64,000 nt of DNA from Selaginella moellendorffii (Eukaryota > Plantae > Lycopodiophyta). A program made the translations under genes and the position numbers. The notes under the pieces were generated by a model. It was not told where the DNA came from. It was given only the letters and a program-made list of their open reading frames with translations, and did not search any database. Numbering within the stretch: the first letter of the stretch is position 1; every line of letters begins with the position of its first letter. Below are positions 41,561 through 62,048 of this stretch, piece by piece. The stretch spans positions 534,939 through 598,938 of the forward strand of contig NW_003314288.1 in the NCBI RefSeq assembly GCF_000143415.4. The letters run 5' to 3'.

Positions 41561-43367
41561 CACCAAGCCCCAAACCACCCAGCAGTCTTGGCGCACAGGG
41601 ATGACATCAGCCCTAACCTCTTGCTCCACTGAGCTGCTAGCAGCTTCTCCCCTCCTTAAAAAAAAAGGTCTGTTGTTCTCTTGGAGTTCAAGAGGCATCT
41701 TCTTCACCGTCTCCTCTGTTTTTGCTAGCTAGTTAGCTCTTACAAGAAGGAGCACAAGCCAAGTTCAGCTTCATGCTCAGCTCTATCATCTCCTCTTTAA
41801 GACACCTCACCTCTTTGAACATTCAGGAGAGCTAGCACGCTTCACGTCTAGACGTCCCCCCCCCCCCTTTTTTTTTCACAATTGTCTCTTCAAACTCATC
41901 ATACTTATTTAACTCACCAAACCTTACCAAGCCGAGTGCAGGTTTTGAAACCCCATGAGTCACCTTGGCTTCCAGTTGAGCTCTCCAACAATCTTGACGT
42001 GCGGATGCGTGCAAACTGCTCCTTGAGCCAGGACCATTTCTCCAGGAGATAACTTATGCTACAACACTCTCCGCTCGACGATCTCAATGTGGAAAGATCC
42101 ACAAAGCTGTCCCACTCATCATAGTTGTAGAAGAAATCATCCTCATACTGCATCTGCAACCTTGCTCGAGCCCAAGCCTCCGCCATCACAAGCTTCTCCC
42201 TCATCTTGATCAGCTCACACTTGAGGCGGCAAAACAAGTCCAGGTCCTGAGGAACAACAATGGAATACACCTTTCCCGGGTACCTGTCTCGAAACCTGTG
42301 AAAGTACAGTGGACGATGTGGTGTTTCAGATCACAGCGGAATGATAACTTGATGAAAGCAACAAAACCATCGAGCTCGCTCTTTGGGGATCAATTATCAT
42401 CTCCTCCTTTGAAGCAATGAGCAGCAGGCCTTGATCGCATCCAGAAGTACTAGAGATAGTCTGCAAAAGCAAGTTTGACACCAGTTATTTTGGCAACACA
42501 GAAGAAAAAGAAGAAAATTTATAGAGATCCATACAATCCAAATCAAGATCAATCCTCCACGAATTTAATGCCGCTTTCAGCACCTCCAAGCTCTTCCGAA
42601 AAACGTAGCCACGGTATGCCACAATCGTTCACTTGAAAATCTGAAGATGTCAATCGAAGCATGCAAGCAAAAACATGAAGTAAAGAAGCGCAGGTGGACA
42701 ACAAAGGAGATGAACTGAGCAAGGCCAAGAACACATATAAGGACTGACTGTAAGCACTTGAGGCCTCGCGCAGTTTTTTCCTCCGTGCGTGGCTTCATAT
42801 GCAAAAGAGTTTGGTGTGGTAAGGTATGTTGCAGAGCAGCCAGAAGCCCAGGGTGAATATAAGTACGTGAGGCCTTGTGAGGTTTTACCACTGCCCGAGG
42901 ACTCCTGTGCATGGACCCCGGGCGAGACTCATTTGCGAAAGTGTTCTGCATAAAACTGGTGCCCTGAGGCTTTTGGCCGTGTCGCCCCATGAAGAGCATT
43001 TTTTATTTAATTTGTGTAGAGTGTGGTTTATTTTTGCATATTGAGTGTATCGATATCTTTTAGTTAGCAGATTATATTGAAGAACTGAAGACTACCTACA
43101 GTTAAGTGCATGCAGCAACAGATCATATAAAAAATGAATGCAGAGAATAACAAATCGGGATTTCTAGGAAGTTCGTGCGTGTTGTTAGCATGTACTGATT
43201 CTTTAGCTCTTGAGCAACTGATTGCTGCTGGCTCACATTCTATATATATCAAAGAGATTTTTTTTAAACAATAAACATCTAAGCTGCTGCAGTTAAGCTG
43301 TGACATTGTAAAGTTTAAAAAGGAAAAGAAGAAAAAACAGAAAACACGAAATCGGGATTTCTAGGGT

Positions 43368-46124
43368 ATGCGTGCGGCGCTAGGGTTTGTGTGGTGTGTG
43401 TCATTTCTCAACAATCTCATGGAGTGGAAAACGTTTTTCAGGGATCCCACTTTCTGGTGGGACAACAGGTTCAAGAAGAAAAACAAGTTCTTCTCAGAGT
43501 CCTACCTGGATTTCAAACATGTTTCTACCAGAGAGAGCCTGTGGATCGCCAACAGGAAAACACCAACCTGGGTCTCTGCAAAACTCGAGTCGCTCGCTGA
43601 CCCAGCTGTAGGTAAGGCCACCACGGCCCGCTACAAATCTCCACATACCCCACCTGTAGCTGGTGATGAACGGGTGAGTTTAGGGAGGCTGATACACCGC
43701 GTGAGAGACTCAGCTGAGAGCAGATCCCTTTCTTTGGGAAAACAAGCCCATGAAGCTGTGCTCAAGAGTGATAAGCACAAAAGCAACATCTACTTGTTGA
43801 CGGGATTGATCGATATGTACTGCAAGTGTGGCGAGCTTGAGGAGGCTCGCAAGATTTTCGACTCCATGGGAACCCGGAGTGTTGTGTCCTACAACGCGAT
43901 CATCCAGGGCTGCGGCTCGAATGGGCAAGCTGAACTTGCTCTGGAGTACTACTCTGCCCTGAGAGCTTGTACCACCATTCAACCCAACGATCGGACACAT
44001 GTCGCGGTGATCAGCGCCTGCTCCAGACTTACTACCGAATCCAGCGAGAAGAGGGAGAGAGCTCTACGCATTGGGATGGAGATCCATTCAATTCTCAGCA
44101 AGGAGAAGAAACAGGTAGATCTGTTCGTGGCGACTTGCCTGGTCGACATGTACTGCAAGTGTGGCGAGCTTGAGGAGGCTCGCAAGATTTTCCACTCCAT
44201 GGGAACTCGGAGTGTTGTGTCCTACAATGCGATCATCCAGGGCTGCAACACGAACGGGCGAGCTGAACTTGCTCTGGAGTACTACTCTGCCCTGAGAGCT
44301 TGTACCACCATTCAACCCAACGATCGGACTCACGTCGCGGTGATGAGTGCCTGCTCCAGACTTGCTACCGAATCCAGCGAGAAGAGGGAGAGAGCTCTAC
44401 GCATCGGGATGGAGATCCATTCAATGCTGAGCAAGGAGAAGAAACAGCTAGATCTGTTCGTGGCGACTTGCCTGGTAGACATGTACTGCAAGTGTGGCGA
44501 GCTTGAGGAGGCTCGCAAGATTTTCCACTCCATGGGAACTCGGACTGTTGTGTCCTACAACGCGATCATCCAGGGCTGCGGCTCGAACGGGCAAGCTGAA
44601 CTTGCTCTGGAGTACTACTCTGCCCTGAGAGCTGATAACACCATTCAACCCGACGATTGGACTCATGTCGTGGTGATCAGCGCCTGCTCCACACTTGCTA
44701 CCGAATCCAGCGAGAAGAGGGAGAGAGCTCTACGCATTGGGATGGAGATCCATTCAATGCTGAGCAAGGAGAAGAAACAGCTAGATCTGTTCGTGGCGAC
44801 TTGCCTGGTAGACATGTACTGCAAGTGTGGCGAGCTTGAGGAGGCTCGCAAGATTTTCCACTCCATGGGAACTCGGAGTGTTGTGTCCTACACCGCGATC
44901 ATCCAGGGCTGCAACACGAACGGGCGAGCTGAACTTGCTCTGGAGTACTACTCTGCCCTGAGAGCTGATAACACCATTCAAGCTAATGCTTGCACCTACA
45001 CCTGCGTCCTTGTTGCTTGCGGGAGTGTGATGGCGACTAAGCTCGGGAGGGAGATTCACCAGCTGGTGAAGCATAAAGGGCTGCTGAAAAACAATCCAGT
45101 TCTGGGCTCCAGCCTGGTGAGCTTCTACGGCAAATGCGGCGATGTTGATTCTGCTCAGGAAGTGTTTGACGAGTGCCGAGCTCGGGACAACACGGGTCTC
45201 TGGAATTCTCTTATACAGGCTTACACTCTCCAGGGCCGATCGATCGAGGCCTTGGAGCGTTTCTATTCCATGACTCAGGAGGAGGGCTGTAAAGCTGACG
45301 ATGTGAGTTTTGTCTTGGTGTTGAACGCTTGCAGCCATGGTGGTCTGATCGGGAAAGGAAGGCAGCTTCTGGATGAAATGCCCAAGCAGTATGGAGTCAA
45401 GCCACGTCTGGAGCATTATGTGTGCCTGATCGATATGCTCGGGCGAGCTAACCTCCTTGACGAAGCTGTGAGAGTTCTCAGAGCCATGCCTTTTGAACCG
45501 GATGCAGTGGTTTGGACGTCCCTGCTCGGAGCCTGCCGGAAGTGGAAGAATTACACGGTTGGCAAACTCGCGTTTGAGCGTCTTGTGGAGATGGATCCCA
45601 AGAGCGGCACGCCCTACGCATTGATGGCCAATATATTTGGAAACCTGGGGATGCTCAGTGAAAGGGCCGCTGTTGTGGAGAGAATGAGAGGTGAAGGCAG
45701 CTTCAGGGAGCCCGGGAGAAGCTGGTGGACGGATGTTAGCTCAGGAAAAGTGCATTCTTTTTCTGTCGGGGATAGGAGTCACTCACAGAGCGACGAGATT
45801 GCGGCCAAGCTCAAGCAATTGTTGCTGAGAATGAAAGAGGAGGGGTACGCGAGCGATGTGATCAACGTTCTAAAAGACATACCAGAGGAAGAGAAAGAGG
45901 ATCACCTGTGCGGCCACAGTGAGAAGCTTGCGCTGGGGTGTGCTCTGGTGAACTCGCACCAGAAGGAAACCATCAAAATTGTGAAAAATCTCCGAGTTTG
46001 TGACGATTGCCATGCGGCCACTGCTCTCATCTCTAAGCTGGAAAAAAGGCTAATCATCTGCAAAGATGCCAGTCGGGTTCATGTGTTCCAGGATGGCAGA
46101 TGTTCCTGTGACAACTACTTTTGA
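43368..46124 (+). CDS. PLS-class PPR-E-DYW (WW-type) RNA-editing-factor-like protein with an N-terminal OSB-type PDF motif, 918 aa
   Basis: Intronless ORF; S/P/L repeats; E domain (VVWTSLLGAC); PGRSWWTD, HSEKLA, KNLRVCDDCH, CSCDNYF; N-terminal WKTFFRDPTFWWDNR..YLDFKH..ESLW..PTWV. Confidence 0.93.
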   Translation: MRAALGFVWCVSFLNNLMEWKTFFRDPTFWWDNRFKKKNKFFSESYLDFKHVSTRESLWIANRKTPTWVSAKLESLADPAVGKATTARYKSPHTPPVAGDERVSLGRLIHRVRDSAESRSLSLGKQAHEAVLKSDKHKSNIYLLTGLIDMYCKCGELEEARKIFDSMGTRSVVSYNAIIQGCGSNGQAELALEYYSALRACTTIQPNDRTHVAVISACSRLTTESSEKRERALRIGMEIHSILSKEKKQVDLFVATCLVDMYCKCGELEEARKIFHSMGTRSVVSYNAIIQGCNTNGRAELALEYYSALRACTTIQPNDRTHVAVMSACSRLATESSEKRERALRIGMEIHSMLSKEKKQLDLFVATCLVDMYCKCGELEEARKIFHSMGTRTVVSYNAIIQGCGSNGQAELALEYYSALRADNTIQPDDWTHVVVISACSTLATESSEKRERALRIGMEIHSMLSKEKKQLDLFVATCLVDMYCKCGELEEARKIFHSMGTRSVVSYTAIIQGCNTNGRAELALEYYSALRADNTIQANACTYTCVLVACGSVMATKLGREIHQLVKHKGLLKNNPVLGSSLVSFYGKCGDVDSAQEVFDECRARDNTGLWNSLIQAYTLQGRSIEALERFYSMTQEEGCKADDVSFVLVLNACSHGGLIGKGRQLLDEMPKQYGVKPRLEHYVCLIDMLGRANLLDEAVRVLRAMPFEPDAVVWTSLLGACRKWKNYTVGKLAFERLVEMDPKSGTPYALMANIFGNLGMLSERAAVVERMRGEGSFREPGRSWWTDVSSGKVHSFSVGDRSHSQSDEIAAKLKQLLLRMKEEGYASDVINVLKDIPEEEKEDHLCGHSEKLALGCALVNSHQKETIKIVKNLRVCDDCHAATALISKLEKRLIICKDASRVHVFQDGRCSCDNYF
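43790..44990 (+). repeat. Tandem 333-bp (111-aa) S-P-L units (4 S-P pairs, 3 long L motifs)
   Basis: Period of 333 seen directly, and in repeated off-frame ORF ends at 44173, 44506 and 44839. Confidence 0.95.
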
Positions 46125-46849
46125 AAACATGTCAGTGCTCTTTCTTGCAGTTATCCCTGGTTTTAAACCCTCTGTGAGTCAAGCAGAAACATGGGCCGCT
46201 GAGTGAGCATGCCTCGTCAAAGTACCGCCGTCAACTTGAACTTCACGGAGAAAAAATTAACATTTAAAAGTTAAAACTATGCAAAAGGAGGATGACACGT
46301 TGTCTTAAATTTAAATTTCTTTTTGGTAGCAGAATCGGGGAATGCTGACTAAACCTGCCAACAGGTGCGCCCAGATTCAGATAATAAGCCTTAGTATGAA
46401 GACTTGCCGGTACCAAACTCTTTGCTGATAGCAAGTACCGCCTCATGTTCCGGGAGCAAGGAGATGGCAGCTTGTGGCATGACTAACTTTGGGTTTGTGC
46501 TCCTAGAGCACGTTGAAGACGTGTGGAAGCTGGTGATGACAGCATTTGTTTCTTGCGACGTCACCAGTTCCTCAGCGATGTCTTCCTTCCAGATTTTTTG
46601 AGCTTGTCGTGAGTGGTGACCTGCTTGCTCTCTCATGTGACGACTTCTTCCAGCCTCTGGTGCCCAACCTCAGGACTCTCTTGTGGATGGAGCTAGCCCT
46701 ACACAGTGTCTGTGTGTGTGTTTATCAACCAGCAGATGCACAAATCGTTGAGAATCATAGGCTTAGTATGTAATGTACTAGTGTACATGTACATGTGTTT
46801 CACAGCAGTGGACAAGCTATGATACAATGAAAAAGGTAAAGTCAGGTAT

Positions 46850-47650
46850 TTGTTTAACGTCTGCTTGGAGCAAATATGGCCTCATGACAACCTATTACAA
46901 CCCAGGATGAAAACTCCACATCAAAGCTTAAGGCAGCATCGCTATTGCCTTCATCTTGCTTTACAAACTGAAGTTATCGAGGTTCGTGATTGGATAATGC
47001 TTGATGGTGCTGAGACTCAAATCATCTTTGTTATGGAAACAACCCCATCACCTCAAGGTATTGTTTTCTATCCCCATAACAGTGGTGCACTGTTTCCATG
47101 TATAGTTCCCGAGGAGGTCCCAGTTCCCAGGATGGCCTTCGGTAAAAGGTTCAGGACGATACATCAGAGAGGGAAATACACTGAACTGGATCCTAAGGTT
47201 CAACTGGGAGAATGCTCTGCAATACACTAGTTTGGGGAGTACCTATATCTGATCTTATATAGGATCCGGCTCAGTTATCCTGGGAAGGTAATGAGTTCAG
47301 TGTGTCTTTTTTATGTACAGGTCTAAGCATGGCAGAGAGCTTTTGATGGATAAAATTGACACCAAGCTTATGTGAAAGTTGAAGAATCGGAAGTGAACAT
47401 GTGGAAGACACTGGTGGAAGCTAACGTAAGCTGGCTTCTTGTGCAGGACAGCATCCCTGTTGGTGATTGGCTCACAGTTCACAAAACTCTCTGTATTCTA
47501 TGCAATGAAAACCCCGTGGAGATGCTTGAACACCTCTTCACATGCAAATTTGCAGTTGGTATTTGGCTCTTTGATCAGAGACCTAGATCCAGAATCAGCT
47601 GGTTCATCACGAAATACGGTGACATTTTTCCCTACTGTGATGAACAGTAG
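46850..47650 (+). mobile_element. LINE (L1-like) ORF2 3' remnant
   Basis: zf-RVT-like CILCNENPVEMLEHLFTCKFAVGIW; fragmented. Confidence 0.6.
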
Positions 47651-47699
47651 CTGAGGAGAGAGAAGCTAGCAAAGCATCCCGCTAACAAAACCACTAGCT

Positions 47700-50330
47700 G
47701 TCTCACGTGACACAACACCTCCAGCCATCAACGGGGTCAGAAAAGAAAGAAAGGATAGGAGCAAGTGACTATTTCTCCTCTTCCTCTGGAATGCATCCAA
47801 GTCATACTCAAAATTAGGAAACAACATCATCCTCAGCTTCCCATGTAGCATCATATGGAGAATAACCATTCCACTGAACAAGTAACTCTCTCCAAGTCTT
47901 ACGATGTATGCGCACTAGCCGTTGCTATAACACACAACTAGGGCCAACCTTCAAACATCTATCTCTGGAATCTTGATTGCAGACTGGTCCAAGATATTAC
48001 CAGAATGCAAACACGCCTTCAACTTCCTACATAGAAGACGGGATGAATCTTCACACCACTAGGCAAGTCTAGTTGATAGGCAAGGTCTCCAACTCGTTTG
48101 AGAATAATCCAAGGCCCACAGTACTGTGGTGACAACTTAGAACTACCTCCACCTTGAAGAGCTCATTGAGCTTCAGACAACCGAAGGAAAACCTTGTCTC
48201 CAACCTGAAACTGCTTGTGCTGACGATGCTCCTTTGCCTGGTGCACCTCAAGAGAAGCGAAGTTCATACCAATAGGGGACCGAGGTTGAAAGCTATACAT
48301 TGCCATAAACAGAGCCATCTCAATAGCCAAATGGAAGGCACAGTTATGGGCAAACTCTAACAAAGGCAGGTACTTCTCCCAAATACCTTACCTCTTCAGA
48401 TACCAACAAATGATCTCAGCATGTCTTCCAGCACCTAATTAACTCCTTTTGTTTGTCCATCTGACTGTGGATGCTCATGCTCAACTTTGTCTCAAGCTTC
48501 TGAAACACCGTCTGCCAAAACACCAAAGTGAACGTGCAATCCCGATCACTTACAACATCCTTAGGCAGCCCATAGAGAAATACAGCTGAGCAAGGTCAAA
48601 AGCCTTAGCATTCATCTTCACAAGGAAGAAGTGAGCTAACATCATCACACAATCCACAACAACCCAGATAGCATCATTGCCTTGAAACGCCTACTATGAA
48701 ACTCATAGAAAATGTTATCCCACTTCTGTTGAGGTTAACTATGGTAGAGACCTTCATGCTTCTCACAATCCATTGTGACCACCTGGCCGGTCTAACAACT
48801 GTGCACATACTTATCAACACCTAACTTCATTCGAGACCAAAATAAATGCATCTCTACCAGAACACACGCCCTCAATGTCCTGCACTTGGTGCAATGGACA
48901 CTCTTACAGAATCCACTGTAAAAGAACATCATCTCTAGGAACCATAGCCCGATTCCTCTTGACTAGGAAACCATCTCATACATTGAAGGAAGCACAGTCG
49001 CATTGGAAGAGGCATCCCCCTTCAAAACAACTGCACGTGCCTTCACTACAAAGGAGTTGAAGTCAGCAAGCTCATTAATTTCATCCAGCAAACCACTGGA
49101 GAGCTTCCCAAACAAGATAGAGTTCACCATCCTAAACAATGGAGAAATAACCACCTTTACTGTCTACTATCTACAAATTTTCTTTAAGACAATTTCCCTA
49201 TTTCTGAAAGGTCTTGGAAACCTAGCAACTTTGCTTTAGTAATCTGAGGTCAAAATTACCCTTTGACTTTTACTCGGGAGAAATCGGTTTTCATCACCTT
49301 AAACCCCAGAGCTAAACTCCTTTGGTGGTTTGGAATCTGCACGTCCATTTCCTGCAAAAACTCTAGTCAATGAGCTAGCCGGCCTCGAAACTCCATCTGG
49401 CAAGTGAAAAGAGTGACAAGTGGTAAAGTTATTGACATGAAAAATCCAAACCATACAGATAATGCCTCCACTCTTTGACCGCAACAACTACAACATATAA
49501 CTTCCTATCCCGAGTTGCTAAGTTGCGTCAAACTTGTGGCTTATGTAGGCAATAGGACAGCAGTCTTGCACCAAGACAGCTCCTATACCCTCATCACTAG
49601 CCTTGTTAATGAAAGTATGCGTAGCATCAGAGCCAAAGAGGACACTGAGCACTTGGCTATGCACAACTCATTGCACAAACAACTGTACAGCTCAGATGAG
49701 TTGATACAATTCTTCTTCACTCCTTCAGAAAGCTTAGTGACAGCAGTGTCAGCTAGAACACGAGTAGATACAATCTCTCCTTGGTCCACACTGACACCCA
49801 TGGCCTCACTAGGATCAGAAAGAGAAAAGGACTCATGAGCCATACCCTCTGAACGTATAGACTCCATAGCGTGAACCTTAGCCTTCTACCACAAGTGGCT
49901 TATCACAAGCAAATATTTGTAGAATATACATGATTGCTTTAACCGCTCAAACGCTTCTTGACACTTTCACCCCACACCAACTTAGCATGCTTGGTGGTGT
50001 TTCGAAGAATATCCATCAAAGGAGCAGCAATCAAGGAGAAGTCCTTCACAAACCGGCAAAAGACTCCCAGCATACCAACCCATGCACAGGAGGGGGAACA
50101 AGCTAGTCAACAACTATCTGAGTCTTTTGAGGATCATCTTGTGGCACCACATGTCTGAGATAGGTGATCTCTTCCAAGAAGAATTCACGCTTTGACAGTT
50201 TAGAATACAGCTTATTCTCCTTCAATAGTGGCAACATTTGCCTCACATGCATCTCATGTTCCTCCTTAGTCGTAGGACATCGTCAAAGTAGTGCCTTGCA
50301 CATGAGATTGCAAAACTCTATCAAAAGAAC
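47700..50330 (-). pseudogene. Highly degenerate chromovirus pol remnant (RT, RH, integrase, chromodomain)
   Basis: HRQHKQFQVGDKVFLRL; DRDCTFT; chromodomain-like GYSPYDATWEAED near 47830-47870; boundaries approximate. Confidence 0.65.
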
Positions 50331-50439
50331 TGTTTAATAATAGTTAGCCTTGGCCATCATATGAAGCAACATCTTTGCTGAGTTAGAAAAGACTCCTTGA
50401 GCATTCCAAAGCTTCAAAACGAGATAGTCAAAGGATCTC

Positions 50440-52830
50440 AACTAGCAATAAGTTCTAGCATGGCTAGTCTTTTTTTGATCAATTCTTCTTAGTTGATTTT
50501 GTATTGTATTGCCATTCGTAGTGATGAAACGATGTACTTGAGTGGTGTCAAAGCTTCAAGGCTGTAGGTGAGCTTAAATGGTGTCGAATTTGTTGAAACC
50601 TTATATGCAATTCAATATGCCTATAGAGTGATCGTCCCTGTCTTTCTGATTTATTTTCATGATTTTCATGAGGATGTTTTTGAGTGTCTTGTTTGTAGAC
50701 TCTGCTTGACCATTGCCTTGAGGGTAGTATGGTGTTGAAACCTTGTGCTTGATAGTGAATTCTTGAGTTAAAATCTTGATGGTTTCATTGATGAAGTGTG
50801 TTCTTTGATTAGTGACGAGTTCTCAAGGTAAGCCATATCTTGTGATGATGTTTTCGTAGATGATCTTTGTTGTGTTCTTTGTTATAGTAGTCTTTATTGG
50901 TTGAGCTTCAGCCCATTTTATCATATAGTCTATTGTAATTAGAATGTACTAGTTTTGCTTGGAGCTTGTTATAAGTGGACCAACAAAGTTGAGTCCCCAT
51001 TATTGAAAAGGTTTGAGTGGAGTTTCTAGATGAAGTTCTTGAGTTTATTTCTTTAGTGCATACTTGGTTCATTGTAGATGTTGCATTTTTGACAGAACTT
51101 GGCTTAATTGTGCCAAAGTGTTGGCCACCAAAGTCTTGCTTGTAAAATTTTTTGAGTTATGAATTCTTTAGCAAAATGTCCTCCTACTTGTCCACAATAG
51201 GCTTTTTCAAGTAGATCTTGTGTTTCTTCCATCTTTATAAAATGTTATCTCTTCCTTATTTGTGCAATTTTCTTCCCACGATTGAATATGGTTTTGTCCT
51301 CAAGACAAATTGCTTGCTCTTGTCGGAGGTTGAATATCAACTTGTATTGTTGCTATTGTGAGGTAGTAGTAGATGTTGTCCATCTAGGTTGGTGATGTGT
51401 GGATTCAAAGGATATTGGAGTCAGGAAAGTCATCCATGTTGTGTTTCAATTGTTCATTGGTTGTAATGCGGCTTAGGTGTTCATGTTCTCTTCCAGGCTT
51501 GTAAATGATCTTGAAGTTGTATTTTTGAAGTAGTAAGAACTATCGTGCAATTTTGCCGGTGAGGATTGTTTTGTTGAGAAGGTGGAGGAAGTTATCGAGT
51601 AGGTAGTATCAAAACTTTTGGAGTGTGTAGATCATTGCTGGAGCTTCTTTTTCAGTTGTAGTGTAGTTCATTTCAGCTGAGTTGAGTCTTCAACTTGCAT
51701 AGTAGAGTTGTCGGTCTTTATGATCTTTTTGTTGTTGCAAAAGGATCACTCTGAGGGCATAGTTGGAGGTGTTGACTTGGATGTTGAAGTCTTTGTTCTA
51801 GTTTGGTTGAGCAAGTTTTGGAGCTTGGGTGAGGGAATTCTTGGCATTTTGACAATCTTGGGTCCAGTTGTAAGCTTGATATTTCTTGAGGAGTTTGGTG
51901 ATAGGTTTTGCAATCTTGGTGTAGTCTTTGATGAATCTTCGATAGTATCCCATCTTACTGAGGAATGATCAAAGGCTTGAAATGTTGAATGGATGTTGTA
52001 TGTTGGTGATTGTGAGGGTCTTGTCCTTGTTGATGAGGATTCCTTCTTTGGAAATTAATGTTCGAGTGGAATTCCTGATTTGATAAAGAAAATACACTTG
52101 TCAAGGTTCAATGTGATATTGTGTTCATGGCATTTGATGAAGCATTTCTCTAAGCATTGGAGATGATCTTCTTTGTTGCTGAAGACATTAAAGTCATCCA
52201 TAAATACTCGCATAAATTTGGTGAGGTATTTTCGAAAAGTGTCAATGATGATCTATTGAAACATGAATGGTGCATTGGAGAGACTGAAAGGCATGTGAAG
52301 GTAGGCATATGCTCCCTATGGATTGATGAAAGCTGTCTTGTGTTGATCTTCAGATGCAATGTGTACTTGATTGTGTCTATTGAAGCCATTGAGAAAGGAG
52401 TACATCTCATATCCTACAATTGCATCAAGAATTTCATTAGAGAATGGAATTGAAAAGGTGTCCTTTTGAGTTGTATCGTTGAGCTTTTTATAGTTGACAC
52501 AAATACTAAGCTTGTTTTTCTTCTTGGGGACAATGATTAGTGGTGATAGCCATTTTGGATTTTGAATTGGGAAGATGAATCCAACATTTTCGAGTTTGTT
52601 AAGCTCTTATTTGACTTTGGTTTGTATGTTGGGATTCATTCGGTAGGTTAATTGCTTTGTTGGTACCACTTTTGATTGAAGTTCAATCCGATGTGTGTAA
52701 AGTTCAGATGGAATTCCTTGTAAGTCAGTCTAGGACTAGGTGAAAACATCTTGATAAGTTTCAAGTAGTTGGGTTGCTTTTGCTTTAAAATCTTCATCAA
52801 GCTCTTGGGCAATGTGAAGTTTTTTTGGTT
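50440..52830 (-). pseudogene. Family C Ty3 pol (RT-RH-INT), degenerate
   Basis: Reverse-complement paralog of 25024-26038 plus 39054-39490; related to 260-2990. Confidence 0.85.
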
Positions 52831-53020
52831 CTGCTGCCATGTTTTAATTCTCGGGCCATGCTGTGAGATCAGATCTTCTTTGCAGGCACGCCAAAGCCTT
52901 ACCAAAGAATCTTCTTGAATATTTCCGGAATAAATTTTAAAATGACCCCAACACTTTAGATTTGGTCAGGGTTTTTGAAAATTACTTAAGAATCCTCTAA
53001 ATTCACCTTTTTTTTTGTGC

Positions 53021-56000
53021 TGTGAGGGCCAAGTGTATAGCTACGATGCTGTATACTAATATTAACGTAGTGAGATTTTGGTAGCCATCGGATTGGTTTC
53101 AATCTGGGCCACTCACTCCTGTATATAAGCTAGGGTTTTTGGGCTAATTGATATGCACATTTTCTGTATTCCCTTTCTATATTCCAAACACTCACATTGG
53201 TGGAGGTGAGGGGCACCTTTGATTGTCCCTGGGGAGTGTTTGGATTTAGGATTTCAGTTTAGATCTAACTTCTGCATTGTCTAGATCTAACTTTTTTTAT
53301 TTCCTTTCTTTTGTTCTTTCCTTTCAGGATTTTGGTTTAGATCTAGTGTTTTGCATTGTCTAAATCTACCATTTCCTTCTAGCTTTTTGTCCTTTCTCTT
53401 CTTTTGCTCTTTCTTTTTCATTTGTCTCCATGGCAGATCAACAATCTCCTTCTAAATATGTCGGAGCGGGTCAAGCCAAGAATGTTGTGGCTAGCACTTC
53501 GTCAAGATCTTGTCAGACTTGTGCATGCACTTGCTCCTGCCACCCTTGATGATGCTCTTCGCTTGGCATAACGTTATAATACATCGCCTCTTCCACTTCT
53601 CGCTACACGTCCTTCAACTCCACTTCCTATGAGTGATAGTCCTGTTCCAATAGAGATTGATGCTGCTGCTACTCGAGTCCAAGGACAAGGGCGAGGACGT
53701 GGTTGTGGCTGTGATGTTCATTGCTGGGCATGTGATGAAGTTGGTCATACTTATCAGAGTTGTTGGCGCTTTCCGGATTGGCGACCTCCATTTCCTCGGT
53801 GGAGACCTTGGTGTCAGCAATGTCCCATTGGTGCTATTGCGGTGGAAGATTTGGACACCGAGGTGCATCCGGGAAACGAGGTGTCACTTGAGTAATGGAG
53901 GGACCTTGCGCGAATAAGTTAATGACCCTTCTATCTTTCTTTCGGGAGTATCATCAAGGGGTTCACTCGGCACTGGTTTATCCAGTGTTTACTTTCCAAG
54001 CTCATTTTTATAACAAGAGGTCTCATATTATTCTCTCTGTGTTGGTTGATACAGGTTCGAGTTTATCTTCTATTGCTCGACTTATTGCCACACGTTGTCG
54101 TCTACACTTGCGTCGTGCGGTAGATCCAGTTTTCATTCTTTATGGCAACGGCCGCACATATGCATGTGCACGAGATGAGGCAGACCTTGTTGTGTGTGTG
54201 GGCGATCTCAAGGTTGAGTTGCAGTCGTTGCGGGTGGTGCCGAGTCAAGCTTTTGACCTCATTCTTGGTATGGATTGGTTGCAGCACAATCATGCCAAGT
54301 ATGACTTTGAGGCTTCTCCCCCTTGTCTCATACTTCCTTATGTTTCATCCATTCCTCTCACTTCCGTACCTCTTCATCCCTCTACTTCTACCTCTGCTTC
54401 CATTACTTTCCCCCACTATTTCCTCCTATGTTTCTATCTTGTTCTGCTTTTCCCTTTTCTAATCCCTCCAATGATCTTTGTGTTGCAGCTGTTGACCGGC
54501 TCATGAAGGAGTATTCTGATATCTTTGAATTTAACTTATCATTTGGGGCCAAGATTGCCACACATCATCTGATTCCAACCGGGGATGCTCGTCCAATCAA
54601 GGTTCCTGTTTGTCGTCGGTCACCCAAGGAGATCAAGGTTTTACGTGCAAACATCAAGGAGATGTTGGAGAAGAGTGTTATTTCGAAGTCGTGGAGTCCT
54701 TGGGCATGTGAACTTGATCTTGTGACAAAGCTTAATGGGAGTATTCATTTCTGCATCGACTATCGTCCATTAAATGAAGTGACGATCCCGGATGTGTACC
54801 CTCTTCCTCACACTATTGATCTCTTGGATCGTCTAGGGTGAAGTCGTTGGTTCACCAAGCTCGATCTTGCTTCTGGGTACTGGCAAGTACCGATGGCCGA
54901 AGAAGATATTCCTAAAACTGCTTTTTGTACACCGTTTGGTTTGTATGAGTTCTTGGTGATGCCATTTGGTTTGAACAATGCTCCAGCAATTTTCCAATAG
55001 ATGATGGATAAGGTTCTTTGTGATATGCCAGAGGTGACTACTGACTTCATTGATGATGTCTTGATTCATTCAGAGGGGACGTGGGAGGAGCACATTCGTG
55101 ATATGTGTAAAGTGTTGGATCGGCTACGGGACGTTGGTTTAAAGCTGAAGCGGTCAAAGTGCGTGTTTGGGTCCAAGGACACAATTTATCTTGGGTACTG
55201 TATTTCTCGTGAAGGTTTGCAAGTTGATCCTAACAAACTTGTAGCTGTTCTAAAGTTCCCTACTTCGAAGTGTGTGAATGATGTGTAGCGCTTCCTAGGC
55301 AAGGTGCAGTATCTCGGTTGTTTTGTGGATCATCTTTTTGATCGCACTGCACCATTGCAAGCATTGCTAAAGTCATCAATGTCATCTTTCATTTGGTCTT
55401 CAGCTTGTGAGTAGGCGTTTGTGGATTTCAAAGAGCCCTCCAGTTTTGGCATATCCTGATTACACTCGACCTTTTATTTTGCGCATAGATGCTTATGATA
55501 TTAGTCTTGGAGGTGTGTTGATGCAAGAAAGCCCAAGTGTGCCTAGTCAGCGTCATCCCATTGCATATATAAACCATACGTTACAACCAGCAGAGGTGAA
55601 CTACTCCACGACAGAGAAGGAGTGTTTAGCGGCAGTTTAGGGTTTCAAGAAACTTCATGCATATCTACATGGTTCTTGGACGTTACTTGAAGGTGACCAT
55701 GCTGCCATTACTTCATTATTGAAGCGGAAAAACCTGTAATTTTGATGTTGTTCATTGCCTAGGGAGTTCTATGGCTAATGCTGATGCCCTTTCTCGAGCT
55801 CCTCTTCCTTCTCCACTATCTTCTCATGTTTCTGATGAGCCTATTGTTCCAGCATCTTTGGATTTTCTAAACGAGGATTCTATGCCATCGGCGGTTGCTA
55901 TACTTGACGTTCAGTGTTCACAAGGTGCAAAGCAATATCTACTTTTTCTTGATAAGGTTCGCGAGGCTCAAAAGATTGAGCCGTGGATTCAAAGGCTTCA

Positions 56001-57507
56001 AGGTGCATTTGAGAATCCTACATCACTTACTGATGACTTGCCTTTTCAGCATTTACATTCTCAATATCGCCTTGAAGATGGCCTTCTTTATTTTGTGAGG
56101 ACGAATCCTAATGATCATTTACGGCTGGTGGTGCCTTCTATCTTTATTCCGCGGTTTCTCCATGCCTATTATGATTCTCTTATTTTAGGTGGGCATATAG
56201 GACATCGTTGTGTGACCGAGAAGCTGCACAGGTCTTTCTATTGGCCGGAGATGCGACGTGATATTATCCGGTATGTGTGTAGCTACGTTTGGTGCCAAGC
56301 TCGTAATACTCCCCTTTGTGCTGTAGAAGGACGGTTGGAGTTAATTGCAATTTCCTGTCCCTTTGAGTTGGTGGCGTTTGATCTTATTGGACCTTTTCCA
56401 TAGTCGATTGCGGGCAATGAATATGTTATTATTGTTTTTGACTACTTGACTCGTTGGGTGGAAGTTGGTGCTCTTGCTAGCACCTCGGCAACTACTGTTA
56501 GATACTTCCTCCTCAATCGAGTGGTGTTTCAGCATTCTTGTCCAGAGCGAATTTTTTCGGATAATAGTCCTGCATTTATGGCTGAGGCATTTCATGTTTT
56601 GACATCTTGTTTGGGGATATGCCACAGTTTCACGAGTGCTTATTATCCACAATCAGATGGTCTAGTGGAACAGCTCATTCGGACATTCAAAAGGATGATT
56701 GCGAAGTATGTGAACTTTCAGCATTCGGATTGGGATGGTTATTTGCCGTCTCTTCGGTATGCCTATGTCACAGGGGTGCAGAGTTATATTGATGCTTCAC
56801 CATATAAACTTCTATATAGTCATGATCCAATATTACCAACAGAGTTGGGTTTACCTTCATGATTGCCACAAGCTCCCGATTCTACGTTGTGGGATCAATA
56901 TTTGACGAGCATTCTTCCACTTGTCCGAGTAGAGTCTGCCGAACACTTAGGCCACGTACAAGTGGGACAACAACGGCACTACAACTCCCATCATCGTTCA
57001 CTTGCGGAATACAAAGTCGATGATTTGGTGTTAGTTTGTTTTCCCGATTTTATGGTACGTTATCTAAGGGGCTCCTTGCACAGTGGAAAGGACCATATCG
57101 GGTGTTGCAGCAAGTTGGACCACAAGTTTATGAGGTTCAGCATGACGTCTAGCAAGCCAATCCTTCGGAGATTGTGCATGTGCAGCAGTTGAAACGCTTC
57201 ATACAAAGGGATCAGGAGTAGTTAATACCATCTACAGATCCACCAATGCCTCCTCTTGATGTTCCTCCAAATCTTGGCCCATCTACAAGAGAACCCTGAT
57301 GGCCTTCCATTATTCCGAGAGGAGGGGATGATGTGAGGGCCAAGTGTACGGCTACAATGCCATATACTAATATTAACGTAGTGGGATTTTGGTAGCTGTC
57401 GGATTGGTTTCAATCCAAACCACTCGCTCCTGTATATAAGCTAGGGTTTTTGAGCTAATTAATATGCACATTTTCTATATTCCCTTTCCATATTCCAAGC
57501 ACTCACA
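53021..57507 (+). mobile_element. Family D Ty3/gypsy element with 176-bp LTRs and a 4-bp TSD; coding region degenerate
   Basis: LTRs 53021-53196 and 57332-57507 (TGTGAG..CTCACA); PBS TGGTGGAGGTGAGGGG; PPT GAGAGGAGGGGATGA; TSD GTGC; CWACDEVGHTYQSC, LVDTGSS, FIDDVLI, YSTTEKEC, SDNSPAF, SAYYPQSDG; empty site at about 41070. Confidence 0.92.
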
Positions 57508-58081
57508 GTGCGAATAATTAAAAAATACTGGTAAGTACATTACTTTAGCTTAAGTTATTATGCAAATAGGGAAAACGTAAACTTTAAACTTTAATTTTCG
57601 GGTAACTCTTGGTCCAGAGCTAAACTTTTATAAACATATCTAAACATGCTCATTTAATTAACCACCAATGAACGGCCAAGATATCTTTACCAGCACTCCC
57701 CCACTAATTTTCTTTCGAAAATAAAAAACTAAAAGCAAAGATGATATTATCAAACACTATTTTTTCAATGTTTGTTTTTTTTTCTTATTTTCTACTATTA
57801 ATTAACTTACAACTCAATCACACAATACTTGGAGCTGGAAGAATTGAATCCAACTTAATTTCAGCAAACTGATGAGGATGGACAATTTTTATTTTTATTT
57901 CTTTTGCACTTCTTAATTTACATTTTTTAATTTTTTTCTACTCTTCTTATATGCACTTCTTCGGTGTATTTGGCCCATTATATTTAGCTGAAACACATGT
58001 ACATGTACACTAGTACACTACGTACTAAACCTATGATACACACTTGTTGCTAATTCTCAACGATTTGTGCATCTGCTGGTT

Positions 58082-58106
58082 CACACACACACACACACAC
58101 ACACAC
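58082..58106 (+). repeat. (CA)n microsatellite, length-variable among the three paralogous blocks
   Basis: CACACA run; shorter (GT)n runs at about 40477 and 46710. Confidence 0.9.
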
Positions 58107-58691
58107 TGTGTAGGGCTAGCTCCATCCATAAGAGAGCATTGAGGTTGGGCACCAGAGGCTGGAAGAAGTCGTCACAGGAGAGAGCAAGCAGGTCACCACT
58201 CATGACAAGCTCAAAAAATCTGGAAGGAAGACATCGCTGATGAACTGGTGAGTACGTCGCAAGAAACAAATGCTGTCATCACCAGCTTCCACACGTCTTC
58301 AACGTGCTCTAGGAGCACAAACCCAAAGTTGGTCATGCCACAAGCCGCCATCGCCTTGCTCCCGGAACATGAGGCAGTACTTGCTATCAGCAAAGAGTTT
58401 GGGTACCGGCAAGTCTTCATACTAAGGCTTATTATCTGAATCTGGGCACACCTGTTGGCAGGTTTAGTCAGCATTCCCCGATTCTGCTACCAAAAAGAAA
58501 TTTAAATTTAAGACTACGTGTCATCCTCCTTTTGCATAGTTTTAACTTTTAAATGTTAATTTTTTCTCCGTGAAGTTCAGGTTCGCAGCGGCACTTTGAC
58601 GAGGCATGCTCACTCAGCGGCCCATGTTTCTGCTTGACTCACGGAGGGTTTAAAACCAGGGATAACTGCAAGAAAGAGCACTGACATGTTT

Positions 58692-61600
58692 TCAAAAGTA
58701 GTTGTCACAGGAACATCTGCCATCATGGAACACATGAACCCGACTGGCATCTTTGCAGATGATTAGCCTTTTTTCCAGCTTAGAGATGAGAGCAGTGGCC
58801 GCATGGCAATCGTCACAAACTCGGAGATTTTTCACAATTTTGATGGTTTCCTTCTGGTGCGTGTTCACCAGAGCACACCCCAGCGCAAGCTTCTCACTGT
58901 GGCCGCACAGGTGATCCTCTTTCTCTTTCTTGGGTATGTCTTTTAGAACGTTGATCACATCGCTTGCGTACCCCTCCTCTTTCATTCTCAGCAACAATTG
59001 CTTGAGCTTGGCCGCAATCTCGTCGCTCTGTGAGTGACTCCTATCCCCAACAGAAAAAGAATGCACTTTTCCTGAGCTAACATCCGTCCACCAGCTTCTC
59101 CCAGGCTCCCTGAAGCTGCCTTCACCTCTCATTCTCTCCACAACAGCGGCCCTTTCACTGAGCATCCCCAGGTTTCCAAATATATTGGCCATCAATGCGT
59201 AGGGCGTGCCGCTCTTGGGATCCATCTCCACAAGACGCTCAAACGCGAGTTTGCCGATCGTGTAATTCTTCCACTTCCGGCAGGCTCCGAGCAGGGACGT
59301 CCAAACCACTGCATCCGGTTCAAAAGGCATGGCTCTGAGAACTCTCACAGCTTCGTCGAGGAGGTTAGCTCGCCCGAGCATATCAATCAGGCACACATAA
59401 TGCTCCAGACGTGGCTTGACTCCATACTGCTTGGGCATTTCATCCAGAAGCTGCCTTCCTTTCCCGACCAGACCACCATGGCTGCAAGCGTTCAACACCG
59501 AGACAAAACTCACATCGTCAGCTTTACAGCCCTCCTCCTGAGTCATGGAATAGAAACGCTCCAAGGCCTCGATCGATCGGCCCTGGAGAGTGTAAGCCTG
59601 TATGAGAGAGTTCCAGAGACCCGTGTCATCCCGAGCTCGGCACTCGTCAAACGCTTCCTGAGCAGAATCAACATCGCCGCATTTGCCGTAGAAGCTCACC
59701 AGGCTGGAGCCCAGAACTGGATTGTTTTTCAGCAGCCCTTCATGCTTCGCCAGCTGGTGAATCTCCCTCCCGAGCTTGATCGCCATCACACTCCCGCAAG
59801 CAACAAGGACGCAGGTGTAGGTGCAAGCATTAGCTTGAATGGTGGTACAAGCTCTCAGGGCAGAGTAGTACTCCAGAGCAAGTTCAGCTTGCCCGTTCGA
59901 GCCGCAGCCCTGGATGATCGCGTTGTAGGACACAACACTCCGGGTTCCCATGGAGTCGAAAATCTTGCGAGCCTCCTCAAGCTCGCCACACTTGCAGTAC
60001 ATGTCTACCAGGCAATTTGCCACGAACAGATCTACCTGTTTCTTCTCCTTGCTCAGCATTGAATGGATCTCCATCCCGAAGCGTAGAGCTCTCTCCCTCT
60101 TCTCGCTGGATTCGGTAGCAAGTGTGGAGCAGGCGCTGATCACCGCGACATGTGTCCGATCGTTAGGTTGAATGGTGGTACAAGCTCTCAGCGCAGAGTA
60201 GTACTCCAGAGCAAGTTCAGCTTGCCCGTTCGAGCCGCAGCCCTGGATGATCGCGTTGTAGGACACAACACTCCGGGTTCCCATGGAGTCGAAAATCTTG
60301 CGAGCCTCCTCAAGCTCGCCACACTTGCAGTACATGTCTACCAGGCAATTCGCCACGAACAGATCTAGCTGTTTCTTCTTGCTCAGCATTGAATGGATCT
60401 CCATCCCGATGCATAGAGCTCTCTCCCTCTTCCCGCTGGATTCGGTAGCAAGTGTGGAGCAGGCGCTGATCACTGCGACATGTGTCCGATCGTCAGGTTG
60501 AATGGTGTTATCAGCTCTCAGGGCAGAGTAGTACTCCAGAGCAAGTTCAGCTTGCCCGTTCGAGCCGCAGCCCTGGATGATCGCGTTGTAGGACACAACA
60601 CTCTGAGTTCCCATGGAGTGGAAAATCTTGCGAGCCTCCTCAAGCTCACCACACTTGCAGTACATGTCTACCAGGCAATTCGCCACAAACAGATCTAGCT
60701 GTTTCTTCTCCTTGCTCAGCATTGAATGGATCTCCATCCCGATGCGTAGAGCTCTCTCCCTCTTCTCACTGGATTCGGTAGCAAGTGTGGAGCAGGCGCT
60801 GATCACCGCGACATGAGTCCGATTGTTGGGTTGAATGGTGGTACAAGCTCTCAGGGCATAGTAGTACTCCAGAGCAAGTTCAGCTCGTCCGTTCGTGTTG
60901 CAGCCCTGGATGATCGCGGTGTAGGACACAACACTCCGAGTTCCCATGGAGTGGAAAATCTTGCGAGCCTCCTCAAGCTCGCCACACTTGCAGTACATGT
61001 CTACCAGGCAAGTCGCCACGAACAGATCTACCTGTTTCTTCTCCTTGCTCAGCATTGAATGGATCTCCATCCCGATGCGTAGAGCGCTCTCCCTCTTCTC
61101 GCTGGATTCGGTAGCAAGTCTGGAGCAGGCGCTGATCACCGCAACATGTGTCCGATCGTTGGGTTGAATGGTGGTACAAGCTCTCAGGGCAGAGTAGTAC
61201 TCCAGAGCAAGTTCAGCTTGCCCGTTCGAGCCACAGCCCTGGATGATCGCGTTGTAGGACACAACACTCCGAGTTCTCATGGAGTCGAAAATCTTGCGAG
61301 CCTCTTCAAGCTCGCCACACTTGCAGTACATGTCTACCAGGCAAGTCGCCACGAACAGATCTAGCTGTTTCTTCTCCTTGCTCAGCATTGAATGGATCTC
61401 CATCCCGATGCGTAGAGCTCTCTCCCTCTTCTCGCTGGATTCGGTAGCAAGTCTGGAGCAGGCGCTGATCACCGCGACATGAGTCCGATAGTTGGGTTGA
61501 ATGGTGGTACAAGCTCTCAGGGCATAGTAGTACTCCAGAGCAAGTTCAGCTTGCCCGTTCGAGCCGCAGCCCTGGATGATCGCGTTGTAGGACACAACAC

Positions 61601-62048
61601 TCCGGGTTCCCATGGAGTCGAAAATCTTGCGAGCCTCCTCAAGCTCGCCACACTTGCAGTACATATCGATCAATCCCGTCAACAAGTAGATGTTGCTTTT
61701 GTGCTCATCACTCTTGAGCACAGCTTCATGGGCTTGTTTTCCCAAAGGAAGGGATCTGCTCTCAGCTGAGTCTCTCACGCGGTGTATCAGCCTCCCTAAA
61801 CTCACCGGTTCATCACCAGCTACAGGTGGGGTATGTGGAGATTTGTAGCGGGCCGTGGTGGCCTTACCTACAGCTGGGTCAGCGAGCGACTCGAGTTTTG
61901 CAGAGACCCAGGTTGGTGTTTTCCTGTTGGCGATCCACAGGCTCTCTCCGGTAGAAATATGTTTGAAATCCGGGTAGGACTCTGAGAAGAACTTGTTTTT
62001 CTTCTTGAACCTGTTGTCCCACCAGAAAGTGGGATCCTTGAACTCCAT
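58692..62048 (-). CDS. Second PDF-PLS-E-DYW (WW-type) PPR protein; start uncertain (first in-frame ATG at 62048)
   Basis: Open frame 58692-62078; FWWDNR..YPDFKHISTGESLW; 6 S-P pairs; intact HSE and CDDC; the ATG at 62101 orthologous to gene 1 is out of frame by a 2-nt TG expansion. Confidence 0.88.
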   Translation of the reverse strand: MEFKDPTFWWDNRFKKKNKFFSESYPDFKHISTGESLWIANRKTPTWVSAKLESLADPAVGKATTARYKSPHTPPVAGDEPVSLGRLIHRVRDSAESRSLPLGKQAHEAVLKSDEHKSNIYLLTGLIDMYCKCGELEEARKIFDSMGTRSVVSYNAIIQGCGSNGQAELALEYYYALRACTTIQPNYRTHVAVISACSRLATESSEKRERALRIGMEIHSMLSKEKKQLDLFVATCLVDMYCKCGELEEARKIFDSMRTRSVVSYNAIIQGCGSNGQAELALEYYSALRACTTIQPNDRTHVAVISACSRLATESSEKRESALRIGMEIHSMLSKEKKQVDLFVATCLVDMYCKCGELEEARKIFHSMGTRSVVSYTAIIQGCNTNGRAELALEYYYALRACTTIQPNNRTHVAVISACSTLATESSEKRERALRIGMEIHSMLSKEKKQLDLFVANCLVDMYCKCGELEEARKIFHSMGTQSVVSYNAIIQGCGSNGQAELALEYYSALRADNTIQPDDRTHVAVISACSTLATESSGKRERALCIGMEIHSMLSKKKQLDLFVANCLVDMYCKCGELEEARKIFDSMGTRSVVSYNAIIQGCGSNGQAELALEYYSALRACTTIQPNDRTHVAVISACSTLATESSEKRERALRFGMEIHSMLSKEKKQVDLFVANCLVDMYCKCGELEEARKIFDSMGTRSVVSYNAIIQGCGSNGQAELALEYYSALRACTTIQANACTYTCVLVACGSVMAIKLGREIHQLAKHEGLLKNNPVLGSSLVSFYGKCGDVDSAQEAFDECRARDDTGLWNSLIQAYTLQGRSIEALERFYSMTQEEGCKADDVSFVSVLNACSHGGLVGKGRQLLDEMPKQYGVKPRLEHYVCLIDMLGRANLLDEAVRVLRAMPFEPDAVVWTSLLGACRKWKNYTIGKLAFERLVEMDPKSGTPYALMANIFGNLGMLSERAAVVERMRGEGSFREPGRSWWTDVSSGKVHSFSVGDRSHSQSDEIAAKLKQLLLRMKEEGYASDVINVLKDIPKKEKEDHLCGHSEKLALGCALVNTHQKETIKIVKNLRVCDDCHAATALISKLEKRLIICKDASRVHVFHDGRCSCDNYF
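59830..61690 (-). repeat. Tandem 333-bp S-P-L units (6 S-P pairs, 5 long L motifs; one unit is 330 bp)
   Basis: Repeated DMYCKCGELEEARKIF units; one unit lacks a codon (SKKKQL). Confidence 0.95.

Follow-up and report, generated by a model that had tools for sequence, protein, structure and literature searches.

The window analysed here, 64,000 nucleotides of Selaginella moellendorffii DNA (contig NW_003314288.1), contains two intact genes, W1 and W2, one in each arm of an inverted segmental duplication (Table 1). Both translations match the Pfam profiles PPR, PPR_1, PPR_2 and PPR_3 (E-values 1e-22 to 1e-89) and carry E and E+ (E1/E2) motifs (PF20431, PF20430), followed by a full-length DYW domain (PF14432); the deaminase motifs HSE (HSEKLA; HxE) and CDDCH (CxxCH) are visible in both. 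Motif lengths of 31, 36 and 44 residues with canonical landmarks assign the tandem PPR motifs to the PLS class, and by their domain make-up W1 and W2 are PLS-class PPR-DYW proteins of the C-to-U RNA-editing-factor type. The arms of the duplication are 94-99% complementary over the inverted-repeat pairs I1, I2, I10, I12 and I18-I20, and are separated by an 11.4 kb spacer containing Ty3/gypsy debris. A remnant of a third family copy, still followed by the downstream flank of the family, lies in the same window.

Table 1. Features of the W1/W2 region, in window coordinates.
Feature	Coordinates	Strand	Details and basis
Remnant of third family copy	39481..39888	+	last 136 codons (DYW) only, 2 in-frame stops; tblastn 86% identity
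Family downstream flank 3' of DYW remnant	40137-41225		flank matches
Inverted segmental duplication, arm 1	41560..46720	.	upstream flank, W1 and ~0.6 kb downstream; inverted repeats, blastn
W1, intact PLS-class PPR-E-E+-DYW gene	43368..46124	+	918 aa; ORF, translation, Pfam PPR/E/E+/DYW
W1 array	43788..44987	+	TRF period 333, 95% matches; unit boundaries, code residues
W1 units, each S+P+L	43788-44120, 44121-44453, 44454-44786	+	final S+P only: 44787-44987
W1 unique C-terminal part, L-S-P-L2-S2-E1-E2-DYW	44988..46124	+	Pfam coordinates, motif slicing
W1 DYW domain	about 45843-46118	+	Pfam
Ty3/gypsy protease and integrase	53895-54503, 55771-56400		Pfam
Inverted segmental duplication, arm 2	58090..63340	.	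W2 and flanks; inverted repeats, blastn
W2, intact PPR-E-E+-DYW paralog	58692..62078	-	1128 aa, listed from GTG; ORF, translation, Pfam
W2 DYW deaminase domain	58698..58973	-	Pfam PF14432, residues 1036-1127, profile positions 1-92 of 93
W2 array	59829..61691	-	TRF; unit table; nearest-neighbour distances
W2 units 1-3	61691-61359, 61358-61026, 61025-60693	-
W2 units 4-5	60692-60363 (330 bp, 3-bp deletion), 60362-60030	-
W2 last partial unit, S+P only	60029-59829	-

W1 probably starts at the ATG at 43419 (MEWKTFF...), a start that is common to other paralogs. In W2 this upstream ATG is out of frame and adjoins a (GT)n run, so that the earliest ATG in frame lies at 62048-62046 (MEFKDP...). The shared start (MEW/MEF...) runs straight into a PDF-like motif, and no organellar transit peptide is evident at the ORF starts, the first residues already belonging to this motif; nor was an upstream exon found for W2, the RNA contigs showing no joints. 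The proteins may be located in an organelle.

Repeat units and predicted recognition

The initial annotation described 111-aa S-P-L units that are almost identical at the DNA level, and tandem repeat analysis bears this out: TRF reports a period of 333 for W1 at 43815-44981 (3.5 copies, 95% matches, no indels) and for W2 at 59835-61664 (5.5 copies, 95% matches). In all, W1 has 3.6 and W2 5.6 tandem copies. Each unit consists of an S motif of 31 aa, a P motif of 36 aa and an unusually long L motif of 44 aa. Among 27 inner units the mean identity is 95.0% for nucleotides and 90.1% for amino acids. Within one and the same protein, repeated and unique motifs are far less alike, with 9 of 31 shared residues for S and 7 of 36 for P. 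Counts of four units in W1 and six in W2 hold for the S motifs; full units number three and five plus a partial one, as the final unit of each array comprises S and P only and is followed by a unique L. By nearest-neighbour distances, units 2, 5 and 6 of W2 are unit-1-like modules.

The code residues were as first listed: NN,NN,ND,TN in the P motifs of W1 and NN,NN,TN,ND,NN,NN in those of W2; TS,TS,TT,TS and TS,TS,TS,NS,NS,NS in the respective S motifs; and SN in W1, SD in W2, in the unique S motif after the array. All the variants noted earlier (GSNGQ/NTNGR, ACTT/ADNT, FDS/FHS, CSRL/CSTL, QV/QL) were recovered, arranged as a mosaic with all four combinations between blocks. Since the four combinations are seen even for blocks of 4 nt and 3 nt, as in NTNGR x ADNT, recurrent mutation is excluded.

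In editing factors of this family, P and S motifs each recognise one RNA base through their fifth and last residues, and the base aligned with the last S2 motif lies 4 nt upstream of the cytidine that the DYW domain deaminates; W1 and W2 would be expected to work likewise. Read in this way, the PPR code calls for conflicting bases in W1 and W2 at 6 of the 10 coded positions, which agrees, at the level of prediction, with the earlier proposal that these otherwise similar paralogs recognise different sequences. The code strings differ in all six paralogs of the family described below, so that every paralog would have its own predicted recognition string. The W1/W2 family presumably binds and edits RNA, its members may well act on different real targets, and the differences could be of adaptive value.

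A paralog family and its transcription

Four further copies of the family (A, B, C1 and C2) are found in three other loci, with 6-9 units each; C1 and C2 form an adjacent pair. At the loci of A, B, C1 and C2, ORFs of 1209, 1248, 1472 and 1020 aa run without interruption and contain 6.5, 6.5, 8.5 and 5.5 copies of the 333-bp unit, and unit numbers over the six paralogs W1, W2, A, B, C1 and C2 (six loci, four scaffolds) are 4, 6, 7, 7, 9 and 6. The ORFs of five of the six members, at 0.9-1.5 kaa, are still open. C2 carries a frameshift upstream of the DYW domain, with singleton changes of 9N:1S; this and the decayed DYW fragment in the window indicate that the family also yields pseudogenes. The impression that W1 and W2 are a specially close pair did not survive the comparison: their 1134-nt C-terminal parts differ from each other at 23 sites and from those of paralogs on other scaffolds at 18-31. 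A reading of A and B, or of W1/W2 and C1/C2, as two haplotypes was rejected, the flanks being 90-95% identical and the orientations different; at the sequence level the copies are paralogs, not alleles. Very long ORFs at locus L001 proved to be stretches of N that mark gaps in the assembly.

The annotated models of the four other copies are in error, as they remove the repeats as if these were introns, and the family is consequently invisible in protein databases and PPR censuses. The proteins in the databases closest to W1 and W2 are S. moellendorffii gene models, and word searches found no relative above 43% identity outside this species, a search limited by models that skip the repeats; as judged from these sequences, the subfamily is seen here solely in S. 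moellendorffii.

The family is transcribed, at the family level. Contigs from three RNA-like runs, each of a different study, cover the gene and short UTRs only (58476-62121, with W2 as the query), with no introns and no upstream transcribed sequence. These contigs match paralog A and not W2: the C-terminal transcript contigs have the letters of A at 18 of 18 sites, and the letters specific to W2, of which there are 12 in 58725-59849, are absent from the RNA or DNA of four public runs, the large run X4 included. A 30-nt loose end at 62074 has no match in the window or the three other loci and therefore probably derives from yet another paralog that is expressed. Short-read contigs break within the array.

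Age, recombination and selection

For most units, the nearest neighbour is the unit that occupies the matching position in a different paralog (A.2-B.2, A.3-B.3-C1.3, A.4-C1.4, A.5-C1.5), which argues that the array is older than the gene duplications; W1.3-C1.2 is a further nearest-neighbour pair. Within the 333 bp of the unit, all four gametes occur at 297 of 630 site pairs, the minimum number of recombination events is at least 12 (Rm >= 12), and a PHI-like permutation test of recombination gives P < 0.0002. C1 contains a perfect self-match of 1156 nt at offset 999, that is, a perfect duplication of three units. Together with unit numbers of 4-9, these results uphold the proposal that units have been exchanged by unequal crossing-over and by conversion, here of short tracts.

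Less of the proposed focus on specificity residues could be sustained. Taking as code positions the fifth and last residues of S, P and L (six per unit), 19 positions vary at high frequency, and these include 4 of the 6 code positions vs 15 of the 105 others (p = 0.008, or p = 0.0007 when position 2 is included). Code positions do vary as noted earlier, but so do many residues outside them, and the enrichment applies to common variants only: of the 28 amino-acid-singleton positions, 2 are code positions, near chance expectation. The code differences are mostly old unit types that are common to positional orthologues and were then reassorted, not new substitutions.

Because a recombination minimum this high invalidates single-tree site models, selection was assessed by counts of singleton and common variants. 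Unit singletons (36N:23S) give an omega of 0.47 with a significant synonymous excess (p = 0.004). In the C-terminal part, pairwise dN/dS is 0.22-0.35 among the five intact paralogs, and lineage-specific changes (30N:23S) give an omega of 0.37, with values of 0.19-0.57 over the individual intact paralogs. New point mutations are thus removed by purifying selection, and the arrays are most likely functional. The mean unit-to-unit dN/dS is 0.84. Common unit variants stand at 22N:5S (omega about 1.3) vs 46N:31S for the rare variants and singletons combined, a difference that does not amount to significant positive selection (MK-like Fisher p = 0.059).

Interpretation and comparison with known systems

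We consider it probable, on the sequences compared here, that W1 and W2 are members of a young nuclear PPR-DYW subfamily with an old array, reshuffled modules and differing predicted recognition strings, and that they are likely functional. In the sequence of events we suggest, the array came first, and segmental duplication then multiplied the genes that carry it. Later, whole modules were gained and lost by unequal crossing-over, leading to 4 to 9 per gene, and short-tract conversion reshuffled some eleven sequence blocks with two states each. Code residues lie in four of the blocks (S5 T/N, P5 N/T, P36 N/D and L44 D/G), and the combinations of P5 and P36 alone yield all four code pairs NN, ND, TN and TD.

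We speculate, more tentatively, that the modules serve as cassettes, that is, that near-identical modules, kept alike enough for recombination, create new specificities by module gain or loss and exchange of two-state code blocks and not by point mutation. If this possible reading is true, P5 and P36 alone would give Y, U, A or G, the mechanism would help the nucleus to keep pace with thousands of organellar editing sites, and one would expect individuals and haplotypes to be polymorphic in unit number and code, and W1, W2 and the other paralogs to have distinct real targets. For the question of how a plant whose editing sites run into the thousands makes PPR specificity factors to match and replaces them over time, the family offers a concrete, testable route, namely recombination among near-identical modules.

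The same features could also be the product of neutral birth-and-death, in which a repeat-prone array in a hyper-expanded PPR family has its code reshuffled without functional consequence, the copies are redundant or decaying, and the enrichment at code positions reflects ancestral unit differences. The clustering of W1, W2 and the DYW remnant in one window, the recombination and the variable unit number are birth-and-death features; the code differences that are reassorted and not new, the MK-like result short of significance, the mean unit-to-unit dN/dS, the decay of C2 and of the DYW fragment with its stops, and the lack of W2-specific transcripts in the four public runs all fit this explanation. 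Selection against new mutations in units and C-terminal parts speaks against it, however, as do the open ORFs in five of six members and the transcription of the family, and we regard it as unlikely.

We find it highly improbable that unit-number differences and part of the mosaic result from misassembled repeats of paralogs or two haplotypes, although the copy numbers stem from one Sanger-era assembly of 95% identical repeats with N runs in the window, L001 and L002, the perfect self-match of C1 could be artefactual, short-read contigs cannot span the arrays, and the unique letters of W2 are missing from the four runs. Against this, arrays are in frame at all six loci on four scaffolds and free of gaps, positional orthologues are common across scaffolds, and the singletons carry a signature of selection. 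Moreover, Sanger reads of 700-900 nt can place units that differ every ~20 bp, as these do.

TAL effectors of Xanthomonas consist of near-identical 34-aa repeats, one module per nucleotide, with nearly all variation in two specificity residues. The initial comparison of the arrays with TALEs stands as far as the near-identical tandem modules are concerned, along with the reading of one nucleotide per module and a change of specificity by repeat gain, loss and shuffling; it fails in that 15 of the 19 common variable positions lie outside the code residues. Unlike in TALEs, moreover, the unit is made of three different motifs and reads RNA, and there is no homology between the two.

Among plant proteins, W1 and W2 resemble PLS-class PPR-DYW editing factors with the architecture (P1-L1-S1)n-P2-L2-S2-E1-E2-DYW, such as Physcomitrium PPR56/PPR65 and Arabidopsis DYW proteins (PMC8110955, PMC10482289), in motif order, E1/E2, a complete DYW domain with HxE and CxxCH, and a readable fifth/last code on P and S motifs. 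They differ from factors of the PPR56/PPR65 type in triplets that are ~95% identical in DNA, a 44-aa L motif, the N-terminal PDF-like motif and the absence of an evident transit peptide. Clusters of restorer-of-fertility-like (RFL) PPR genes likewise show tandem duplication, unequal crossing-over, recombination, variable RNA-recognition residues and truncated remnants (PMC7380019, citing Fujii 2011 and Melonek 2016), and the W1/W2 family shares the clustering, the recombination, the variable recognition residues and the remnants. As described there, however, RFL genes are P-class without a deaminase and exchange mainly from gene to gene, whereas W1 and W2 are PLS-class with DYW and exchange occurs among near-identical modules within one gene. 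For RFL genes there is good evidence of diversifying selection, which is only suggested here.

Selaginella editing factors with unusual, regular arrays of monotypic S-type PPR motifs are known from the same genus, and synthetic consensus PPR and PLS editors have been built (PMC8809517, PMC8110955). W1 and W2 consist of P-L-S triplets and not of a single motif, and DNA near-identity is not described for S-type arrays in these two papers. Designer PLS editors string together consensus triplets whose differences lie mainly at the fifth and last residues; W1 and W2 resemble them, but their arrays are natural. As natural counterparts of such editors, W1/W2-type proteins could be scaffolds or a natural experiment on the PPR code. 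Non-seed plants are without MORF cofactors (PMC8809517), and these proteins are therefore expected to work without MORF in their natural host. The full-text literature searched held no description of near-identical PLS-triplet arrays, and a prior description may exist.

Homogeneous PLS arrays do occur in ferns and gymnosperms (for example Adiantum P0047 and Ginkgo P0014 among the search hits), where successive triplets at an offset of 101-102 share 60-70% amino-acid identity. These arrays are much older and more diverged than those described here, whose units show ~90% protein and 95% DNA identity and whose copy numbers differ among very recent paralogs. The likeness of successive triplets in the fern and gymnosperm proteins suggests array growth by triplet duplication, and Adiantum P0047, like W1 and W2, has a PDF-like N-terminus.

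Architecture, surroundings and relatives of W1 and W2

W1 and W2, the two PPR-E-E+-DYW genes within the window, are convergent ORFs with Pfam matches to PPR families, E, E+ and a full-length DYW deaminase domain, and HxE and CxxCH motifs are present in both. In each repeat unit, an S motif of 31 aa is followed by a P motif of 36 aa and by an L motif that, at 44 aa, is unusually long; the final unit of both arrays stops after S and P and leads into a unique L-S-P-L2-S2-E1-E2-DYW tail. A 3-bp deletion shortens unit 4 of W2. Reading both genes unit by unit, we recovered every code pair (fifth and last residue of each motif) and every named unit variant listed in the initial annotation.

A PDF-like motif (…DPTFWWDNRFKKKNKFFSESYPDFKH…LWIANRKTPTWV…; 43419-43600 in W1, 61860-62048 in W2) opens both proteins, and the fern protein P0047 has a similar N-terminus; no evident transit peptide was found at the N-terminus of W1 or W2. 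The opening ATG of W1 is out of frame in W2, beside a (GT)n run (62046-62101, minus strand); the common start is probably a MEW/MEF codon.

Both genes lie inside one inverted segmental duplication, whose arms are 94-99% complementary and enclose an 11.4-kb spacer with Ty3/gypsy debris. The window also holds the decayed end of a third family copy, the 5' part of which was not found elsewhere in the window.

The closest database matches are S. moellendorffii gene models of 506-617 aa, and their loci (L001-L003; spans of 3.6-4.2 kb) were taken from GCA_000143415.2. The DNA there contains uninterrupted ORFs, paralogs A, B, C1 and C2, while the GenBank/RefSeq models P0001 (617 aa), P0002 (566 aa), P0003 (506 aa) and P0122 (223 aa) are shorter; the annotation thus removes the repeated units as spurious introns. 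C1 is missing from every called-gene list, and C2 has a frameshift ahead of the DYW domain. Since the flanks are just 90-95% identical between loci, these are paralogs, and the possibility that they are two haplotypes of the assembly was rejected. Database protein searches returned no relative beyond S. moellendorffii above about 43% identity. Downstream of C2, a 324-aa ORF contains a 12-bp tandem repeat of about 32 copies (TCTCGGACTCCA; L003 19254-19618).

Features of the family in the window and in the three fetched loci
Feature	Sequence	Position	Strand	Details
Third family copy, decayed	window	39481-39888	+	DYW end only, 2 in-frame stops
Duplication arm with W1	window	about 41560-46720		inverted-repeat comparison
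W1 ORF	window	43368-46124	+	918 aa
W1 array	window	43815-44981		Tandem Repeats Finder: period 333, 3.5 copies, 95% matches, no indels
Ty3/gypsy-type protease, integrase, gag-protease ORF fragments	window	53895-56400 (between W1 and W2); 63269-63853 (upstream of W2)
Duplication arm with W2	window	about 58090-63340		inverted-repeat comparison
W2 ORF	window	58692-62078	-	1128 aa
W2 array	window	59835-61664		Tandem Repeats Finder: period 333, 5.5 copies, 95% matches, no indels
Paralog A	L001	1967-5596		1209 aa, 7 S motifs
Paralog B	L002	9959-13705		1248 aa, 7 S motifs
Paralog C1	L003	4211-8629	-	1472 aa, 9 S motifs
Paralog C2	L003	10735-13797		1020 aa, 6 S motifs
Repeat-skipping gene model	L001	2003-5596		uninterrupted ORF, 1209 aa
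Repeat-skipping gene model	L002	10001-13705		uninterrupted ORF, 1248 aa
Repeat-skipping gene model	L003	10001-14150		uninterrupted ORF, 1020 aa

Homogeneity and history of the arrays

The near-identical unit arrays are real and far beyond chance. Inner units share on average 95.0% of nucleotides and 90.1% of amino acids (39 units in all), whereas a repeated and a unique S motif of the same protein share 9 of 31 residues, and P motifs 7 of 36. Of the other PPR proteins retrieved, a fern and a Ginkgo protein have the most homogeneous arrays, with 60-70% identity from one triplet to the next, and by this measure the S. moellendorffii family is the young extreme of a continuum. In the PLS proteins P0047 (Adiantum), P0014 (Ginkgo), P0091 and P0127, successive 101-102-aa triplets are 55-72% identical, a likeness suggestive of earlier rounds of the same triplet amplification. 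No description of such near-identical arrays was found in the literature searched, which did not extend to two key PPR surveys.

Most units have their nearest neighbour at the corresponding position in another paralog (A.2-B.2, A.3-B.3-C1.3, A.4-C1.4, A.5-C1.5; also W1.3-C1.2), so the array predates the gene duplications. In C1, units 3-5 equal units 6-8: 1156 nt match perfectly at an offset of 999 (L003 5507-7661), the result either of a three-unit duplication that happened very recently or of faulty assembly. C2.2 and C2.3 are 2 nt apart. W2 units 2, 5 and 6 resemble unit 1, and the last P motif of W2 is therefore NN, rather than the TN or TD of all other paralogs.

There is good support for the proposal that units exchange sequence by unequal crossing-over and conversion. 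In 24 inner units, 297 of 630 pairs from 36 informative sites fail the four-gamete test, at least 12 recombination events are required within 333 bp, and a PHI-like statistic is lower than in all 5000 permutations. Recurrent mutation as the source of the mosaic is ruled out by the multi-nucleotide blocks NTNGR (4 nt) and ADNT (3 nt), which are seen in all four combinations.

High-frequency variation (minor state in at least six units) affects 19 of 111 unit positions: four of the six code positions (S5 T/N, P5 N/T, P36 N/D, L44 D/G) compared with 15 of the 105 others (Fisher p = 0.008; 0.0007 with position 2 counted; 0.004-0.033 at other thresholds and in the S+P-only subset). All four pairings of P5 with P36 (NN, ND, TN, TD) are found, and P36 shows complete linkage with the CT/DN block. 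Amino-acid singletons hit code positions only at chance level (2 of 28 affected positions); the code-pair diversity is thus old unit-type variation reassorted by recombination, not a burst of new substitutions. The comparison with TALEs drawn in the initial annotation is apt as regards architecture and the way the arrays evolve; unlike in TALEs, variation is not restricted to specificity residues, the majority of common variable positions being non-code.

Constraint and transcription

In the unique C-terminal part (378 codons), pairwise dN/dS is 0.22-0.35 at dS 0.036-0.057, and lineage-specific changes total 30N:23S (omega 0.37). Unit singletons (36N:23S, omega 0.47) show a synonymous excess (p = 0.004). 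The intact copies, among them W2 (6N:9S), thus behave like constrained coding sequence. In the frameshifted C2, singletons stand at 9N:1S, as expected of a pseudogene. Common unit variants stand at 22N:5S (omega about 1.3), a contrast with rarer variants, singletons included, that is only suggestive (p = 0.059).

Three small RNA-like runs, each from a different study, gave Logan contigs that span 58476-62121, the gene with short UTRs, and leave uncovered the 1.9 kb upstream of W2, a stretch covered by the large run X4. These contigs contain no joints over this span, indicating an intronless transcript. Transcription holds at family level: the C-terminal contigs (1.3-1.4 kb) differ from W2 at 21-24 positions and carry the letters of paralog A at 18 of 18 variant positions compared, and those of W2 at none. 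W2-specific letters had no independent DNA match in the runs aligned. The 5' contigs contain a 12-nt insertion (WKTF) typical of W1- and B-type copies and absent from W2. Contigs of the RNA-like runs X25 and X26 continue upstream of 62074 by 30 nt that are absent from the window and from L001-L003, which points to at least one further paralog that is expressed and whose 5' leader differs.

Predicted recognition

In the PPR code, TN specifies A, TD G, ND U, NN a pyrimidine (Y), NS C, SN A and SD G, with TS weakly A, and the S2 motif of an editing factor is aligned at -4 of its target. The motif arrangement follows PMC8110955. The six paralogs yield six different predicted strings. From -19 to -6, W1 would read a Y. 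a Y. a U. a A. A U, and W2 a A. C U. C Y. C Y. G U; six of ten coded positions conflict, and the two proteins would accordingly be predicted to differ in editing target. It is plausible that recombination among units generates new editing specificities, a claim that is now open to test. W1 and W2 are of the same kind as known PLS-DYW editing factors, to which this family adds an RFL-like recombinational evolution.
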